A DNA stretch of 64,000 bases from Macrostomum hystrix (GCA_950097015.1 CATNEN010000033.1:1736001-1800000); one strand, 5' to 3'. Positions 43,562-55,606 are shown, counted from the first letter of the stretch. A program made the numbers and translations. Notes: generated from the letters alone by a model not told the origin.

Positions 43562-44764
43562 GCAGATGGCGTTGGCTCTTAGAAATTTTCTAATTTGAAA
43601 AGTAATTTTTGCGCCAATTTGATTTGGGAAGTTTCTGGCATAATTAGATGTTAGGTCTCATATTTAAAATGCTGTGAATTCCCACGCTTGTTTTGTCCTC
43701 TATTTTTCTGGCACAAAATGTGCTTTAAATAAGCAGTTATTGCTAAATTAGCCTCTGAAAAGTTTCTGTGTGATATCCTTACTGAAATTCGCATGTGTAG
43801 CCTTTTCTCCATATTCTCACTTAGAATTCCTAGAGATTATCTATAACTTGTGATGTGACGCCTTTTAGCCAATACTCATTTTGATTGAAATTCTATTTTA
43901 GTTTCTCACTTACCTGTCATTTTGCCAATTCATGTTTAAAATTGAGGTCCTCGGACTGAACAGCTGTACACAGAATTTGCCGAGGCGATGGCTGAGGCGG
44001 TGGCATCGACCATGACAGTAGGAAGACCACCCCCCCTGGCGAAAGACTATACGGGGGTATTTCAAATACCCAGTGCCAACTTCAGCGAGAGCTCCCAAGC
44101 CGAATGACCAATTTTCCTGAAAGTCCACCATTTGGAATTTTCCGCATTTTTATGATGAACTAATTTTCAAAGCCGTCTTCGGCATATTCAGCAATTCTTG
44201 TCGAAAACCCTTGTGACAAGGACAACTAACGTTGCTCGGTATAAACGTCATGGCGAATATGGCGAAAATCGAATGGTGGTTTTTGCCACTAGACACCTCG
44301 ATGAGAATTGTTGAATATCTCAATGCTGTGTGATTCTGGAATTTATCACGCATCGCACGAGAACTCTCAAAGAGATTCTCCTGTTTAACTTCAGGTGGCA
44401 CATGTTTTTTATTATATGTAAAAGCCTCGCCGTCAAAAAATTTCGGTAGGAAAATTCCGAGAAACGCCTTTGTTATTCTTTTCTGTAATTTGTTCGTGAT
44501 CAACCGTTAAAGTACATATTGTCTAGTTATCATTTATTTAGTTGTTTGTTTGGTATGACAATGTTTGACAATGCACACTGCCTGACAAAAAAATTCAGGA
44601 CAAATTTACACGCAAACATGCGAGTGTGCTACGGGGTCAGCGGGTCTATTGTCACCTGCGTCAGTGCCCACAGCCCATTGCAAAAACGAATAATTTATTC
44701 GTAGGGTTCTTATCATGGCTCTCATGTAAAGCTATATAAATAAATGAAAAATTCTAGCTAGACT

Positions 44765-45225
44765 TGAGTTCATTAGCCCAATGACCAGACCCCGCCTAGG
44801 CCGTGCCGAATTCATCAGACCAATGACCAGACCCCGCCTAGGCCGTGCCGAATTCATCAGACCAATGACCAGACCCCGCCTAGGCCGTGCCGAATTCATC
44901 AGCCCAATGACCAGACCCCGCCTAGGCCGTGCCGAATTCATCAGACCAATGACCAGACCCCGCCTAGGCCGTGCCGAATTCATCAGACCAATGACCAGAC
45001 CCCGCCTAGGCCGTGCCGAATTCATCAGCCCAATGACCAGACCCCGCCTAGGCCGTGCCGAATTCATCAGACCAATGACCAGACCCCGCCTAGGCCGTGC
45101 CGAATTCATCAGACCAATGACCAGACCCCGCCTAGGCCGGGCCGAATTCATCAGCCCAAGGACCAGAGCTCGCCTAGGCCGTCCCTAATTCATCAGCCCA
45201 ATGACCAGACCCCACCTAGACCGTC
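44765..45225. repeat. 42-bp minisatellite AATGACCAGACCCCGCCTAGGCCGTGCCGAATTCATCAGACC, ~11 copies
   Basis: Near-perfect tandem copies. The last degenerate copy overlaps the stop codon at 45216-45218 of the minus-strand gene. Confidence 0.96.
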
Positions 45226-48200
45226 CCGAGCCGCTGAACCGTTGCAGCCGCGAAGCAGGCGGCGGTCAGTGCGGCGAACGGCTGCCAGAGAAGGCCCTGC
45301 TCGCCAGTGTGAAAGTCGGCGCAGCCGCGAATCAGCAGGAAGGACGGACAGCGGCTGCCGAGCGCGGATTCCAGCACTTCGTCGAATCCGGCATCCGCGC
45401 CGATGGGCTTGGCATTCATCGATGGCGTCGATGATGTGGCGATAGTTTCACCACAGGCGACAGGTCCGAAGGCGACAGTCGGTGTCGTGGCCGAGGTTCG
45501 CGGCGGTCGATTAAACGCCGGTGCCTCCGCCGCCAGCGACTCGAGATTGGCGATCCAGTCCGCGCCTCCGTCGTCGGTCATTTCTTCGGCGACGGCTCTG
45601 GCCGCAGCGATGAGTCGCCGGTCCGAGGCCCGCCAGATTCGTCCGCTGGCGGCTTCGAAATAATCACAATCTTCATCGTCGCCGATAACGATGTCGCCAA
45701 GACGACAAGCTCCGGCGGAACCACCGACTCCCACCAGCAAAATGTGCTCGACGTCTTGGAAGACTCCCAACAGGCGGGTGACGACGTTACCGCAGGCGAC
45801 TCGCGCCTGGAGGCCACCGGGGGCGCCAACCACAGCCGGAAGCTTCGTGCTGACGACGCTGCGAGTCCCGATGCGGCCGAGGGTGTACACATGCGAGTCA
45901 CCGCTGCCACCAGCCCTGGTCTCGTACTGGACGAAGGACTCCTTGTCGACAGTCACTGCGTCCAGCGCTCGCTTCTCGCACATCAGCCGGGTCACCAAGG
46001 CGACTGTGGGCCGCGAACGACGCAGCAGCTGCAGGTCGGCGAAGTTGGCCCGATTGAAGCCGCGCACCCTGCCCATGCCCCAGCGGTCCTCTGCTGAGAC
46101 AGCTGCCTGCTGCAGACCTTCTGTTCGGTTGAGCCTTCGGTTGCCGCGGCTGGCAGTCTCCGTGGCGTGGGACAGCTCCTCCTGCAGCAGGTAGGCGGTC
46201 CCGCCTGGCACCGTGCGTGGGAAAAGCCTTCGCTGCTCAACCAGGGCATCGAGGGCAGCTTCGGTTGCGCCGGAATCTGCGCCAGAATTGGCGGATTTGA
46301 CGGCACTGGCAGGGAGGAAACATTCGATCATGCCGATCGGGAAAATTTTAGAGGATTAGGGATATCTTTTCACCAGGTCACATTGTACTCACCCGACCAG
46401 CTCAACTCGATTGAGCACATTGGGAAATGCGGCCTCCACCAAGCTGAGTAGCTGCTCCTGCAGCCGTTGAGCCTCTAGATAATGAGTTTGTTTGAAGAGT
46501 TTGAGCTGACTTTGAAGCATATCATCGGTAATTGCAAATAAGGATCAGGGTTCGTGATTCGGAGTTTGGGACTGGAAATCGGAATCTCAGTGGTCGGTGC
46601 CTACCAAGCAGGCGGTCCCTGCGCTTCATCTCTGCCTCACGGTCGGCCTGCTGCTCGGCCAGCGCCTCGGCAGTCCTCTGCTCCCACTGCTCCGCGTCCC
46701 AGGCCAGCGGCTCCAGGCCTTCGTTGGCCGCCCGGCGCCAGTTCTCGCGCTGCCAACGTCGCCTCGACTCGCTTCGCGTCAGTTCGATGCTCGCCCGTCT
46801 CGCCACCGCTCCCTCGTCAACGCTGCTTTCTGTTGGCGCGTCTGGGAGCAGTTCGAAGGACAGAATCGGGACTTCTTCGTCGGAACTCGATCCCGACGCC
46901 TTCGGCTTCGTCACCACCGTTAGGCTATGTCTGCTACGGATGCTGAGCTCATCCTGGCCCAGACTGAGACTGAGAGTGCTGCCATCGTAGCTGAACGGCA
47001 ACCGTCGCTGCAGACTGTCGCCATCGTTGATTCTCGCCAGCAGAATCCGCTGACTGGCAGACGAAGACTCCAATGGCGCCAGCCGGATGACTGTCCCAGC
47101 CTTGCGGACTGGCATCTGGCGAGCCAGCGGCTGCAGCAGCTGATAGTCGCTGGCTGCGGCGTGGTCCAGAACCAGTGGAAAAGCCGGCGAGGGCCTCTCG
47201 GCTGTGCTGAGGGCGCGCAGTAGAAGGCGGCACAACAGCCGCCCCTCCGCTCCAAGACTATCCGAGCCACCTGCGGTCTCGTCGTCTCGTCTCGGATGTA
47301 CTTTTATTTCTAGCAGGTAGTTGCCCGGCCGGGGAAATCGGACGTGCACCTGTGATGGTGGAGTAGGTGCGGGCTGATCTGCTATCCATAGACAGAACCA
47401 CAGTCTGCCCGTCTGTAATCTGAGTTTCATTTCTGCGATCTATTTCCACCAAGATGTTAATCGAACCTGAAATCCGTCTTGGGCTCCGTTCACCAGCACC
47501 GACTCCTCCAGGGGCCTCGCCTGTGAGTCCTGCAATGGCAGAATAGCCGCCTTCGCCACATGGCGACCCTGCGTGCGAAACGCGAAGACCAGCTCGGTCT
47601 CGTGGCGCACAATGAGGCACGGCTCCCGGCCGCCACCAGGCAGAGTCGGCGACGTCAGCCGGATGTCATCAACCAGTCTGCGACGACTTCTTCGCCGTCC
47701 ACCAACGTCGTAGTCGTCTTCTGCCTCCGCTGCCGGCCATCCCAGCAGGCCGTTCTCCGGCAGGCCGAGCTGCGCCCCGGCTGCCGCGGAGTCGGCGACA
47801 ATCAGCAGCTCACCGAGCGGCCTCAGCCGGTTGGCGTCGCACCAGATTGTGACGGCGAACCAGCCGCTGTGAGGCGCGAGAAACCGGAAGCCGCGCTCGC
47901 GACCGCCGTTGATCGACCACTGCAGCAGGTGGCGGTTCAAGGAGGCCGCAATGCCCGGCTGTTGTCCAGGCTGGCCGCCGAATGTCACATGACACTGGAG
48001 TGGCTCGTTTGGATCGTCGCCTGCAGCGCGGGTTTTTTTGGATGTCAGATTCCACCATCGCTGACTAAAATCCTCTGTTATCCCCGCCTCCCTCACCCAG
48101 CGGTGTCGGTGCCGTCAGCCACCATGAGGCTTCCCCGTCCTCGGCAGCCAACTCCGGCTGTGCTGGCGACCCAATCGGTTCTCCGAGCTGCAGCCGGACG

Positions 48201-50435
48201 CCCAGCCGCTCAGCCTCATCAGTTAGGCCGAATTCAGGCAGCTGGCCGGCCGGAAGTCTGGCCGGATCCGGCGCCGCCGCCGGGCAGTGGACGATGTAAG
48301 CGGCGAAGTGCAGCTCCTCATCTTCATCCGCCATAGTCAGGCCGATCCGGAGTTCGAATCTGCCAGCCCGGGGCGCCAGGAACTTCAGCCTGACTTGGCC
48401 GGAGCTCAGCCGAATCGGCTTGCTCACCGAGTCCCCAGTCAGGGCGTCGACAGGCGGTCCCGCGGCAGTTTGCGTGCTGGGAAGCGGTGCCGCCTATGGC
48501 ATGGTCTGAACTGCTTAAGAACGGCTGCAGCTCACCTTCATTCTACTCCCCACTCACCATCATTCTACTCCCCACTCACCATCATTCTACTCCCCACTCA
48601 CCATCATTCTACTCCCCACTCACCATCATTCTACTCCACACTCACCATCATTCTACTCCCCACTCACCATCATTCTACTCCCCACTCACCATCATTCTAC
48701 TCCCCACTCACCTTCATTCCACCCTCTCACCTTCATTCTACTCCCCACTCACCTTCATTCTACTCCCCACTCACCATCATTCTACTCCCCACTCACCTTC
48801 ATTCTACTCCCCACTCACCATCATTCTACTCCCCTCTCACCTTCATTCTACTCCCCACTCACCATCATTCTACTCCCCACTCACCTTCATTCTACTCCCC
48901 TCTCACCTTCATTCTACTCCCCACTCACCTTCATTCTACTCCCCACTCACCATCATTCTACTCCACACTCAACATCATTCTACTCCCCACTCACCATCAT
49001 TCTACTCCCCACTCACCTTCATTCTACTCCCCACTCACCTTCATTCTACTCCCCACTCACCATCATTCTACTCCACACTCACCTTCATTCTACTCCCCTC
49101 TCACCTTCATTCTACTCCCCTCTCACCTTCATTCTACTCCCCTCTCACCTTCATTCTACTCCCCACTCACCATCATTCTACTCCCCACTCACCTTCATTC
49201 TACTCCCCTCTCACCTTCATTCCACCCTCTCACCTTCATTCTACTCCCCACTCACTTTCATTCCACCCTCTCACCCCTGAAGCAACTGGCCTGAGGAAGC
49301 ACCTTTGCTGAGCAGCTGTGGCGGGCACTATCCGCAGGCTGCTGCAGTAGCAGGTCGACCACTCCGCCAGGACTGGGGATGACGTTGAGCGGGCAGTTGA
49401 CGGGGTCCAGCTGGCACAGCGCCATGGCGCTCTTGTTGCCATCGAAATAGGCCGGCAGCCGGTGGAATTCAGGCAGGCTGACGGGCCGGACCAGCAGCTG
49501 CCAGACCGCGGCGGGCTCCGGCCACAGCGGGTGATGCGAGAAGGCCAACAGCGCCGGGTCAGTCAGGAAGTAGAAATCGTTCCGCTGAGCTACTGCGGCA
49601 GCTGCCACGGCGGCTTCTGACGCTGCCGAATCTGCGGAAGCTGCCGGTGGCAGGCCGGCCGAGCCCCAGATGGCGTCCACGTGACGCCACTCGCCGTCAA
49701 GGAAGCAGGCAAACCAGCTGCCGCCGACGTGGCTGCGGTGTCCAGTGCGGTAGTTGAGGCCCTTCTTGTGACCCTCCAGGCGCTGGCAGGGAACCCCGCT
49801 GAGACTACGCCGTCCGATGTTTGAGCGAACGATGGGATTTGAGGGATGAGTTGAGTTTCATCATGTGTGTAAATTACTTAACGACTGACTTTCCGCCTAC
49901 GGTAAGTGATATTCCTAATGGGACATTGCGGGCACCTCATGACGGCCTCGAAGACTTCAGACTGCCAATCCGGCTTCCCCGCGCTCCGTTGTGCCAGGCA
50001 AGGCAGTTGGGCCAGCTCGTCGCGCCGCTCGCACAGCCGGCACACCAGCCCGAAGGCCGCCACAGTTCTGTCCAGGTCGGCAGGACAGTCGGCGAAGACG
50101 CGCTCACACAGACCGGCTAAATCCGAGCCGGCGGGTGGCCGCAGGTCGAGGGTTCGAATCCTGTCTAGGCCGGCCTCGTAGCGAGACGACTCAAGCAGCT
50201 CAGACTTCAGGCGGCTCGGCGGAAACGGCGGCGGTATCGGCGTCGACGAAGATGGCGACATCAAAGGCGGCCGGCCGTCGCTTCGCTGAAGTCGCCGCAT
50301 GGACTCCGGCGCAGGGATTTCCGCCAGCTCAGCAGGCGAGGCTGGAAGCACATAGTCTTCAAGCGGGATCTCGTCTGGCGCATATTTGTATTCCGCGTAG
50401 TAGCGATGCGGCGGCAGAACTGTCGCGGGCTTCAT
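45216..50435 (-). CDS. Predicted ~1289-aa protein: KY/hillarin-like transglutaminase-like domain + beta-rich repeats + C-terminal nucleoside phosphorylase (PNP_UDP_1-type) domain. Exons 50435-49936, 49804-49303, 48493-48097, 48020-47467, 47349-46605, 46474-46393, 46305-45216
   Basis: All six junctions are GT..AG with matching phases (2,0,1,0,1,2), giving 3870 nt. FEAVMSLSGVPC..GHKKG..Y, WFACFLDGEWRHVDAIWG, NDFYFLTDP..HHP..WQLL..PVSL match KY/hillarin. VYTLGRIG..VVSTKLP, LLVGVGG..RLGDIVI, GPVACG, IRGCADF, WQPFAALTAA match the PNP_UDP_1 fold. The 5' start is uncertain. Confidence 0.75.
48530..49270. repeat. 22-bp minisatellite ACC(A/T)TCATTCTACTCCCCACTC, intronic
   Basis: Tandem repeat between exons 2 and 3 of the KY-PNP gene. 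Confidence 0.95.
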
Positions 50436-50807: not shown

Positions 50808-50955
50808 AAATGAAATGAAATGGAATGAAATGGAATGAAATGGAATGAAATGGAATGAAATGGAATGAAATGGAATGAAATGGAATGAAATGGAATGAAA
50901 TGGAATGAAATGGAATGAAATGGAATGAAATGGAATGAAATGGAATGAAATGGAA
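50808..50955. repeat. (TGGAATGAAA)n 10-bp simple repeat
   Basis: Perfect alternation of GGAAT and GAAAT pentamers. Confidence 0.95.

Positions 50956-51074: not shown

Positions 51075-55606
<4,532 letters not shown>

Follow-up and report, generated by a model that had tools for sequence, protein, structure and literature searches.

A putative scaffold-tethered adenine-nucleotide/nucleoside N-glycosidase encoded by a predicted KY-like/PNP gene fusion in Macrostomum hystrix

Transglutaminase-like proteins include an inactive subclass with Cyk3, hillarin and Ltd-1 as members (PMC3718969), and inactive transglutaminase-like domains have been described as binding modules: the domain of Cyk3 binds Rho1-GDP, hillarin localises to the cleavage furrow, and there is a link between KY and filamin C (PMC3718969, PMC6078408). 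Domains of the nucleoside phosphorylase (PNP) type occur in eukaryotic architectures with NLR, death domain, STING, CHAT and others, among which there is no KY fusion, and ATP/dATP N-glycosidase activity has been shown for the PNP domains of Cap17, DtcC, a fungal NLR and a sponge death-domain protein (10.1101/2023.01.24.525353). Here we describe a locus at 50435-45216 on the minus strand of a 64,000-nt stretch of Macrostomum hystrix DNA (GCA_950097015.1 CATNEN010000033.1:1736001-1800000; this whole stretch is called the window, and all positions are counted on it). Judged from the sequence, it most likely represents a single gene of about 1,300 codons, in which a KY-like 5' part is fused to a winged-helix and PNP 3' part. 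Such a gene would be a chimera of the macrostomid lineage that combines a docking scaffold with an active N-glycosidase. We give this reading, and with it the fusion between exons 5 and 6, a chance of about two in three.

Gene structure and the joint between exons 5 and 6

The minus strand holds seven long, GC-rich open blocks between 50456 and 45219. Enumeration of all in-phase GT...AG pairs yields a natural path through these blocks with canonical sites, a consistent phase and short introns, whose lengths are 137, 773, 76, 54, 130 and 87 nt from exon 1 (E1) to exon 7 (E7). The exons have a GC content of 0.59-0.68 compared to 0.37-0.53 in the introns, and their GC content at third codon positions (GC3) is 0.65-0.77. 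A phase-consistent path of seven exons had already been proposed in the original prediction and is retained here. The length of 3870 nt given there is not, since it would fit a donor of E2 at 49360 and the preferred path amounts to 3963 nt or 1320 codons. The longer E2, reaching to 49267, is preferred because the open reading frames (ORFs) of paralogs align right up to this position. The joints in the 3' part, 46605/46474 and 46393/46305, are identical in both versions.

The decisive joint is the one between E5 (46605-47412) and E6 (46393-46474, 82 nt). The E5 donor TTG/GTAGGC and the E6 acceptor ...TCTAG/AG (the slash marks the splice site) are both of phase 1, and so is the acceptor of the homologous exon in the canonical paralog described below. 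E6 has no start codon of its own. Intron 5 between them (46475-46604) is 130 nt long and has a GC content of only 0.43. Moreover, two proteins from Macrostomum lignano, the species which contributes all of the closest database proteins, read continuously across both the E5/E6 and the E6/E7 joints. These proteins, P0002 and P0003 (A0A1I8HKU0 and A0A1I8HJZ6; 205-207 amino acids), bear unrelated automatic names in UniProt. The last 55 codons of E5 are 76-79% identical to them, they were the only proteins returned by a length-filtered homolog search with E5, and the window locus is their only strong counterpart in the M. hystrix genome. The fusion joint is thus supported by phase, splice signals, composition and the continuity of P0002 and P0003, and the single-gene fusion first suggested for this locus appears to be its best reading.

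Intron 5 also leaves room for two adjacent genes. Read-through in the frame of E5 ends at a stop codon at 46522-46524, and 2 nt downstream of it there is an ATG (46518-46520) in frame with E6 and with no stop between. A KY-like gene might therefore end at this stop, and a winged-helix and PNP protein of about 406 amino acids might start at the ATG, with its own promoter or a trans-splice site in the 130-nt gap. Flatworms of the Macrostomum group use spliced-leader trans-splicing, which is a point in favour of such an arrangement. However, the stretch from the ATG to E6 is intron-like, with a GC3 of 0.375 compared to the 0.65-0.77 of the exons, and the gap contains no AATAAA or ATTAAA as poly(A) signal. 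In the M. lignano models, the E5-like sequence is followed immediately by the E6-like one, and the 15 codons after the ATG are unmatched there. Furthermore, the E6 acceptor retains the phase-1 class of an internal exon, and the tail of E5 is conserved as much as the domains are. We consider two separate genes unlikely for these reasons.

The KY-like 5' part

In the single-gene reading, translation would start with the ATG at 50435 in E1 (49936-50435; donor at 49936 GAG/GTGCCC, phase 2), which encodes the N-terminal KY-like part as far as the region of the expected transglutaminase nucleophile. E2 (49267-49798) follows with the strands of the transglutaminase-like core (G-x-KKG ... W-x-A ... 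GEWR-x-VD-x-x-WG) and the start of a first Ig-like_KY domain, whose second half would be encoded by E3 (48097-48493; donor TGG/GTGAGG, with an alternative acceptor possible at 48418). E4 (47467-48020) is collinear with the repeat region of the paralogs. In E5, a weak Ig-like_KY-type stretch is separated by a Ser/acidic one from a charged helical linker (46605-46770).

Similarity searches were run exon by exon, and since the window pieces gave no significant Pfam match, the KY-like identity is argued via relatives. The genome (220 Mb, 42 contigs) was searched for paralogs and canonical copies. E2 has at least 25 paralog matches there, with 30-47% identity, and for E1 we found eight paralogous first exons, which precede the E2-like exons of the same loci in collinear order. 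Four long paralog ORFs contain Ig-like_KY domains with scores above the Pfam cut-off (1e-12 to 3e-25; 45.7-89.1 bits), and one paralog Ig-like_KY domain aligns to the end of E2 together with E3. In tblastn searches, the paralog ORFs matched E3 with 35% identity (E 1e-7) and E4 weakly (E 1e-3 to 1e-4); for E4 itself there is no Pfam assignment, and its best ESM Atlas score of 0.80 is uninformative. The M. lignano protein PAA88481.1 (P0169, 1228 amino acids) possesses an Ig-like_KY domain as well (88.6 bits), and its cluster mates are named 'KY-like immunoglobulin-like' and 'TGc domain-containing' in UniProt. No PNP part was found in this KY-like M. lignano protein.

The transglutaminase-like character of E2 is suggested by a profile built from E2 and ten relatives (alignment A2, eleven rows). 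This profile matches one solved chain, Chlamydomonas FAP246 (E 1.3e-6), in a region that has been described as transglutaminase-like (PMC11244166). The ESM Atlas returned for E2 a Transglut_core cluster at 0.92 and also Ig-like_KY clusters, one of them from a flatworm. The KY/hillarin-type identity of the 5' part proposed at the outset is supported by way of the paralogs with Ig-like_KY and the match between A2 and FAP246.

There are clear differences in regard to the catalytic residues. At the position of the catalytic His, all eleven rows of A2 show G/S-x-W instead of the H-C-W of FAP246, and the Asp of V-D is invariant. The aligned first exons share no conserved Cys at the place in E1 where, presumably, the catalytic Cys would be expected from its motif. 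Since the His is absent in all aligned members and no conserved Cys exists at the expected place, the KY-like family of this genome would, as far as the alignment shows, be assigned to the inactive, scaffold-type subclass of transglutaminase-like proteins. The missing catalytic triad fits this subclass and is therefore no argument against membership in the KY family.

The members of this family are spread over the contigs C2, C5, C10, C11, C15, C25, C33, C34 and C39, with tandem pairs on C2, C10, C15 and C34; examples of paralog loci are L018:4252-6558, L019:2489-4729 and L020:2952-5285. Within the window gene, intron 2 consists almost entirely of a minisatellite (48531-49263; 22-bp unit, 33.6 copies according to Tandem Repeats Finder). 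Its units carry GT-rich, donor-like strings (GGTGAG), and since this string is present in each 22-bp unit, intron 2 contains many cryptic donors.

The winged helix and the nucleosidase-fold domain

E7 (45216-46305) begins with what are probably the third helix and the beta wing of a winged helix (approximately 46185-46274), continues with a spacer and a complete domain of the PNP/MTAN fold (45228-46007), and ends with the stop codon. A phmmer search with the open block of E7 against 1.84 billion representatives resulted in 642 matches. The best of them are proteins of about 530-770 amino acids, all annotated as uncharacterised, whose C-terminal half contains the matched region. They were found in M. 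lignano, trematodes, a springtail, an octopus, a tardigrade, Lingula, a chiton, a nemertean and Caenorhabditis. The canonical M. lignano protein P0001 was matched with an E-value of 1.7e-52. Even such close relatives are borderline when compared to the Pfam model PF01048 (P0016: 24.9 bits; P0018: 22.6 bits; cut-off: 25.1 bits). More distant matches (E ~1e-7 to 1e-8) are PNP-NLR and PNP-TPR proteins of fungi, in which PNP_UDP_1 is clearly recognised (40-81 bits).

The fold of the domain was predicted confidently. An AlphaFold model of the E7 block, based on an alignment of 50 sequences, has a predicted local distance difference test score (pLDDT) of 81 and a predicted template modelling score of 0.83, and Foldseek relates it to methylthioadenosine/S-adenosylhomocysteine (MTA/SAH) nucleosidases (E 1e-10, probability 1.00). 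In a VIA-align comparison with MTAN (Z 22.6; root-mean-square deviation 2.3 A over 205 residues), residues 117-376 of the model cover residues 1-237 of MTAN, that is the whole chain. According to the model, the NP-I alpha/beta fold is complete in E7. The complete PNP domain of the original prediction is thereby upheld with regard to its fold, although the check with PF01048 itself gave no match.

The comparison with MTAN also points to the active site. A profile of the family matches MTAN sequences with an E-value of 8e-6 and aligns its I-R-G-x-A-D to the V-R-A-I-S-D motif of MTAN, which holds the catalytic Asp that is mutated in entry 1z5o (Asp197Asn). All family-invariant residues are kept in the window domain, namely E127, G160, G209, G220, D221 and D347. 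E127 and D347 are invariant in 46-49 relatives, and nearly all positions conserved to at least 90% are kept, too. From its position only, we infer that E127 is equivalent to Glu12 of MTAN. Since the domain is MTAN-like and both invariant residues, Glu and Asp, are retained, it would be expected to be a hydrolytic N-glycosidase with an adenine nucleoside or nucleotide as substrate. For NAD-processing, which the original prediction had considered as well, there is no support; the closest fold is that of the MTA/SAH nucleosidases.

Directly in front of the PNP-matched region, the relatives carry the Pfam domain HTH_69 (up to 6e-13). No match to HTH_69 was found on the window pieces or on P0002 and P0003. 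E6 aligns to residues 185-209 of P0001, within the HTH_69 match of this protein (187-235), and carries the motif E-A-[YF]-P-N; residues 28-57 of the E7 block form a helix and a beta hairpin in the model, corresponding to the third helix and the wing. As E6 provides helices 1 and 2, and the start of E7 helix 3 and the wing, the winged helix seems to be split by intron 6 (46306-46392, 87 nt). A charged helical linker and an 82-nt exon had been described before and are found as stated; part of what was read as linker is, however, probably the winged helix.

In the canonical paralog on contig C5, an intron interrupts the winged helix at an identical residue and with identical phase. The joint there reads AA/GTGAGT ... 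CAG/A compared to GG/GTGAGT ... CAG/T in the window, and the acceptor and donor of E6 (donor CGG/GTGAGT, phase 2) have the same phases as those of the homologous exon in this paralog. Intron 6 contains an ATG (46329-46331) which had been considered as the potential start of a separate PNP gene. A start at this position was rejected, since it would remove half of the winged helix. The position and phase of intron 6 are common to the canonical paralog, so that this suspicion was not substantiated, and a separate start at 46331 is very unlikely on the basis of the sequence.

The 3' part stems from a conserved invertebrate family that has no name so far. Its proteins, of about 590 amino acids, occur in parasitic flukes, molluscs, brachiopods, nemerteans, tardigrades, springtails and Caenorhabditis. 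PAA70171.1 from M. lignano, XP_013391754.1 from Lingula, ODM92240.1 from Orchesella, XP_036359489.1 from Octopus and a trematode 'expressed conserved protein' are members. In the literature we found no functional study on the winged-helix and PNP family (HTH_69/PF22979), nor relevant work on Macrostomum transglutaminases. The N-terminal domain of the family (about 170 amino acids) is covered by no Pfam model and shows 18 columns conserved to at least 75%, with near-invariant F, E-R-L-F-W and P-D-Y positions, none of which has a counterpart in the window gene. Since this domain is absent and the KY-like E1-E5 stand in its place, the window protein is derived from the HTH_69 and PNP family without being a regular member. 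Within M. lignano, P0177 (MetaClust UPI0007A34438, 2160 amino acids) is found in the same 90% cluster as the 589-amino-acid canonical protein; this entry might stem from a merged gene model or represent a further fusion.

In a quick maximum-likelihood tree of PNP domains, the window sequence groups as the sister of P0001 (SH-aLRT 99) within a clade of flatworms (99). Its terminal branch is about six-fold longer (1.97 compared to 0.31 for P0001). The genome possesses two canonical winged-helix and PNP loci (C5:1932000-1941999 and C12:3009000-3018999) and only one fused copy. The canonical paralog shares 86-98% identity with M. lignano in its individual exons, and three additional introns of the canonical gene fall within the region that E7 spans as a single exon. 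The intron loss in the fused copy is 3'-biased: the three PNP introns are gone and the one in the winged helix is kept. Judged from these sequence comparisons, the 3' part is a fast-evolving duplicate of a protostome-wide family with a winged helix (HTH_69) and a PNP/MTAN-fold domain.

A duplicate with a long branch could also be a decaying one. The 3' part might be the remains of a partial duplication of the canonical gene that came to lie downstream of a KY-like gene by chance, an in-phase path being a 1-in-3 event. Apart from the long branch, the deviant composition, the loss of several family-conserved residues, the shortened insert and the missing Pfam match would fit this explanation. 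Nevertheless, 363 codons are uninterrupted and have a GC3 of 0.72 like the other exons, every family-invariant residue is kept, and the fold is predicted confidently. In addition, E6 and E7 share 58-67% amino-acid identity with M. lignano, and their coding parts are free of stops. A decaying duplicate is therefore quite improbable. The least probable alternative is an operon-like arrangement with trans-splicing at the acceptor of E6 or E7 and a PNP-only product of about 286 amino acids from the first downstream Met (residue 94 of the 379-amino-acid translation of 45219-46355, or residue 86 counted from the ATG at 46331), as this Met does precede the entire PNP fold (residues 117-376), but translation would then leave out E6 and the first 85 codons of E7, which have nevertheless kept the winged-helix fold, the family motif and 58-82% identity with M. 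lignano.

Beyond its exons, the locus is surrounded by tandem repeats. An array with a 42-bp unit (44769-45229; 11 copies, 95% matches) overlaps the final codons and the stop of E7 and begins the 3' flank, where the first signals of the AATAAA/ATTAAA type are located only at 44699, 44538 and 44413. Upstream of the gene start there are arrays at 50808-50955 and 51504-52197 with 10-bp and 12-bp units (236-bp higher-order), and these create long spurious ORFs on both strands.

Proposed function and comparison with known systems

If the fusion is accepted, its origin might be explained most simply as follows. In the lineage of the macrostomids, a duplicate of the 3' part of the canonical gene would have arisen beside a KY-like gene, the copy would have been captured via a phase-1 intron, three introns would have been lost, and accelerated evolution would have followed. 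The shared intron phase, the loss of three introns and the six-fold rate acceleration are the reasons for suggesting exon shuffling. The KY module with the charged helical linker would in this way replace the N-terminal domain of the family. The product might be a non-enzymatic docking scaffold of the KY type, as described for Cyk3, hillarin and KY, to which an N-glycosidase of the nucleoside phosphorylase/hydrolase superfamily is attached, still active and probably directed at an adenine nucleoside or nucleotide. The activity would be confined to wherever the KY module binds, and the winged helix could have been retained as the regulatory or oligomerisation element of the family itself. We infer from these considerations a putative scaffold-tethered adenine-nucleotide/nucleoside N-glycosidase. 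The full proposal, that exon shuffling tethered an active enzyme of this specificity to a cytoskeleton-docking pseudo-transglutaminase, that a spatially confined enzyme resulted and that the regulatory N-terminal domain of the family is exchangeable for other targeting modules, is offered only tentatively and we regard it as rather doubtful.

Several observations weigh against the fusion reading or parts of it. With respect to the KY-like part, Pfam detects nothing significant on the blocks E1-E5. There is no Transglut_core match on E1/E2 even at E 10, and Ig-like_KY (PF23265) stays below the threshold on E3 and E5 (E 0.17-0.29; 11.7-12.5 bits compared to a cut-off of 27), these being two separate exons that match the same part of the model (E3 with E 0.25 at model positions 77-128, E5 with E 0.29). 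The predicted structure of E2 alone is poor (pLDDT 50), with the core split over E1 and E2. Concerning the joint, P0002 and P0003 are partial database gene models that begin within the equivalent of E5 and end within that of E7, and the in-frame ATG at 46520 could begin a separate winged-helix and PNP protein. For the 3' part, the 379-amino-acid open block of E7 (45219-46355) alone gave no match to PF01048 (E up to 1) and no other match in Pfam, PDB sequences, PADLOC or NCBIfam; the absence of a PNP_UDP_1 match on the window pieces counts on this side. The tree is a quick one, and the window sequence enters it with a long branch and deviant composition. Finally, the conserved family residues H165, H216, S225 and Y348 are changed (H165R, H216A, S225G, Y348F) and the internal insert is shortened, so that the activity may be altered or lost.

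The original prediction did not recognise the architecture, and this assessment still holds after a search for the combination, since no other protein searched has both a KY and a PNP part. The KY profile matched none of the 150 best PNP relatives, and among 170 collected proteins its only matches were two KY-like proteins which had been included on purpose. Outside the window, the joint between KY linker and winged helix is seen only in the fragments P0002 and P0003. An NLR-derived effector, to which the PNP domain had also been linked, was considered and rejected: Pfam detected no NACHT or NB-ARC NTPase in any exon, and the nearest relatives belong to the winged-helix and PNP family, with NLR-type proteins being only distant PNP relatives (E ~1e-7). 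The supplement of the survey of eukaryotic PNP architectures contains no accession from flatworms or from the winged-helix and PNP family that we could find (10.1101/2023.01.24.525353).

The locus is of interest for three reasons. If the fusion is one mRNA, it would be a clean and datable case of a new animal gene formed by exon shuffling. It would join two kinds of proteins that are both poorly understood, the inactive scaffolds of the KY type and PNP-fold domains outside metabolism. Moreover, the analysis brings to light the conserved winged-helix and PNP family, which merits a study of its own.

Overall, there are both similarities and differences between the predicted protein and the described systems. 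With the immune ATP nucleosidases of the Cap17/DtcC type and the PNP-NLR and death-domain-PNP proteins it shares the superfamily and the use of PNP as the terminal module of a larger, non-metabolic protein. It differs from the Cap17/DtcC-type and PNP-NLR proteins, since it possesses no NACHT, death, TIR or other immune-type domain and has no match in PADLOC. The bacterial MTA/SAH nucleosidase MTAN (MtnN) is the closest structural match over the whole chain and its Asp-bearing motif can be aligned. However, the identity is only 14-20%, about 60 additional residues are inserted between strands in the window domain, and this domain is part of a protein of about 1,300 amino acids.

The protostome proteins with HTH_69 and PNP (about 530-770 amino acids) are related more closely: the PNP domain and, as it seems, the winged helix are homologous, the window sequence has 40-50% identity to P0001, and intron position and phase as well as the C-terminal end are common to both. 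In contrast to them, the window gene lacks the N-terminal domain of about 170 amino acids and the three PNP introns, and has a shorter insert and an approximately six-fold longer branch. With KY, hillarin, LTD-1 and Cyk3, the predicted protein would share the order of a transglutaminase-like core followed by Ig-like_KY-type repeats, and like the inactive subclass it lacks catalytic residues (PMC3718969). Its identity to a family of at least 25 KY-like loci in the M. hystrix genome and to M. lignano PAA88481.1 amounts to 35-44%. No W180, LIM or SH3 modules are seen in it, and unlike these scaffold proteins it would end in a winged helix and a nucleosidase-fold domain.

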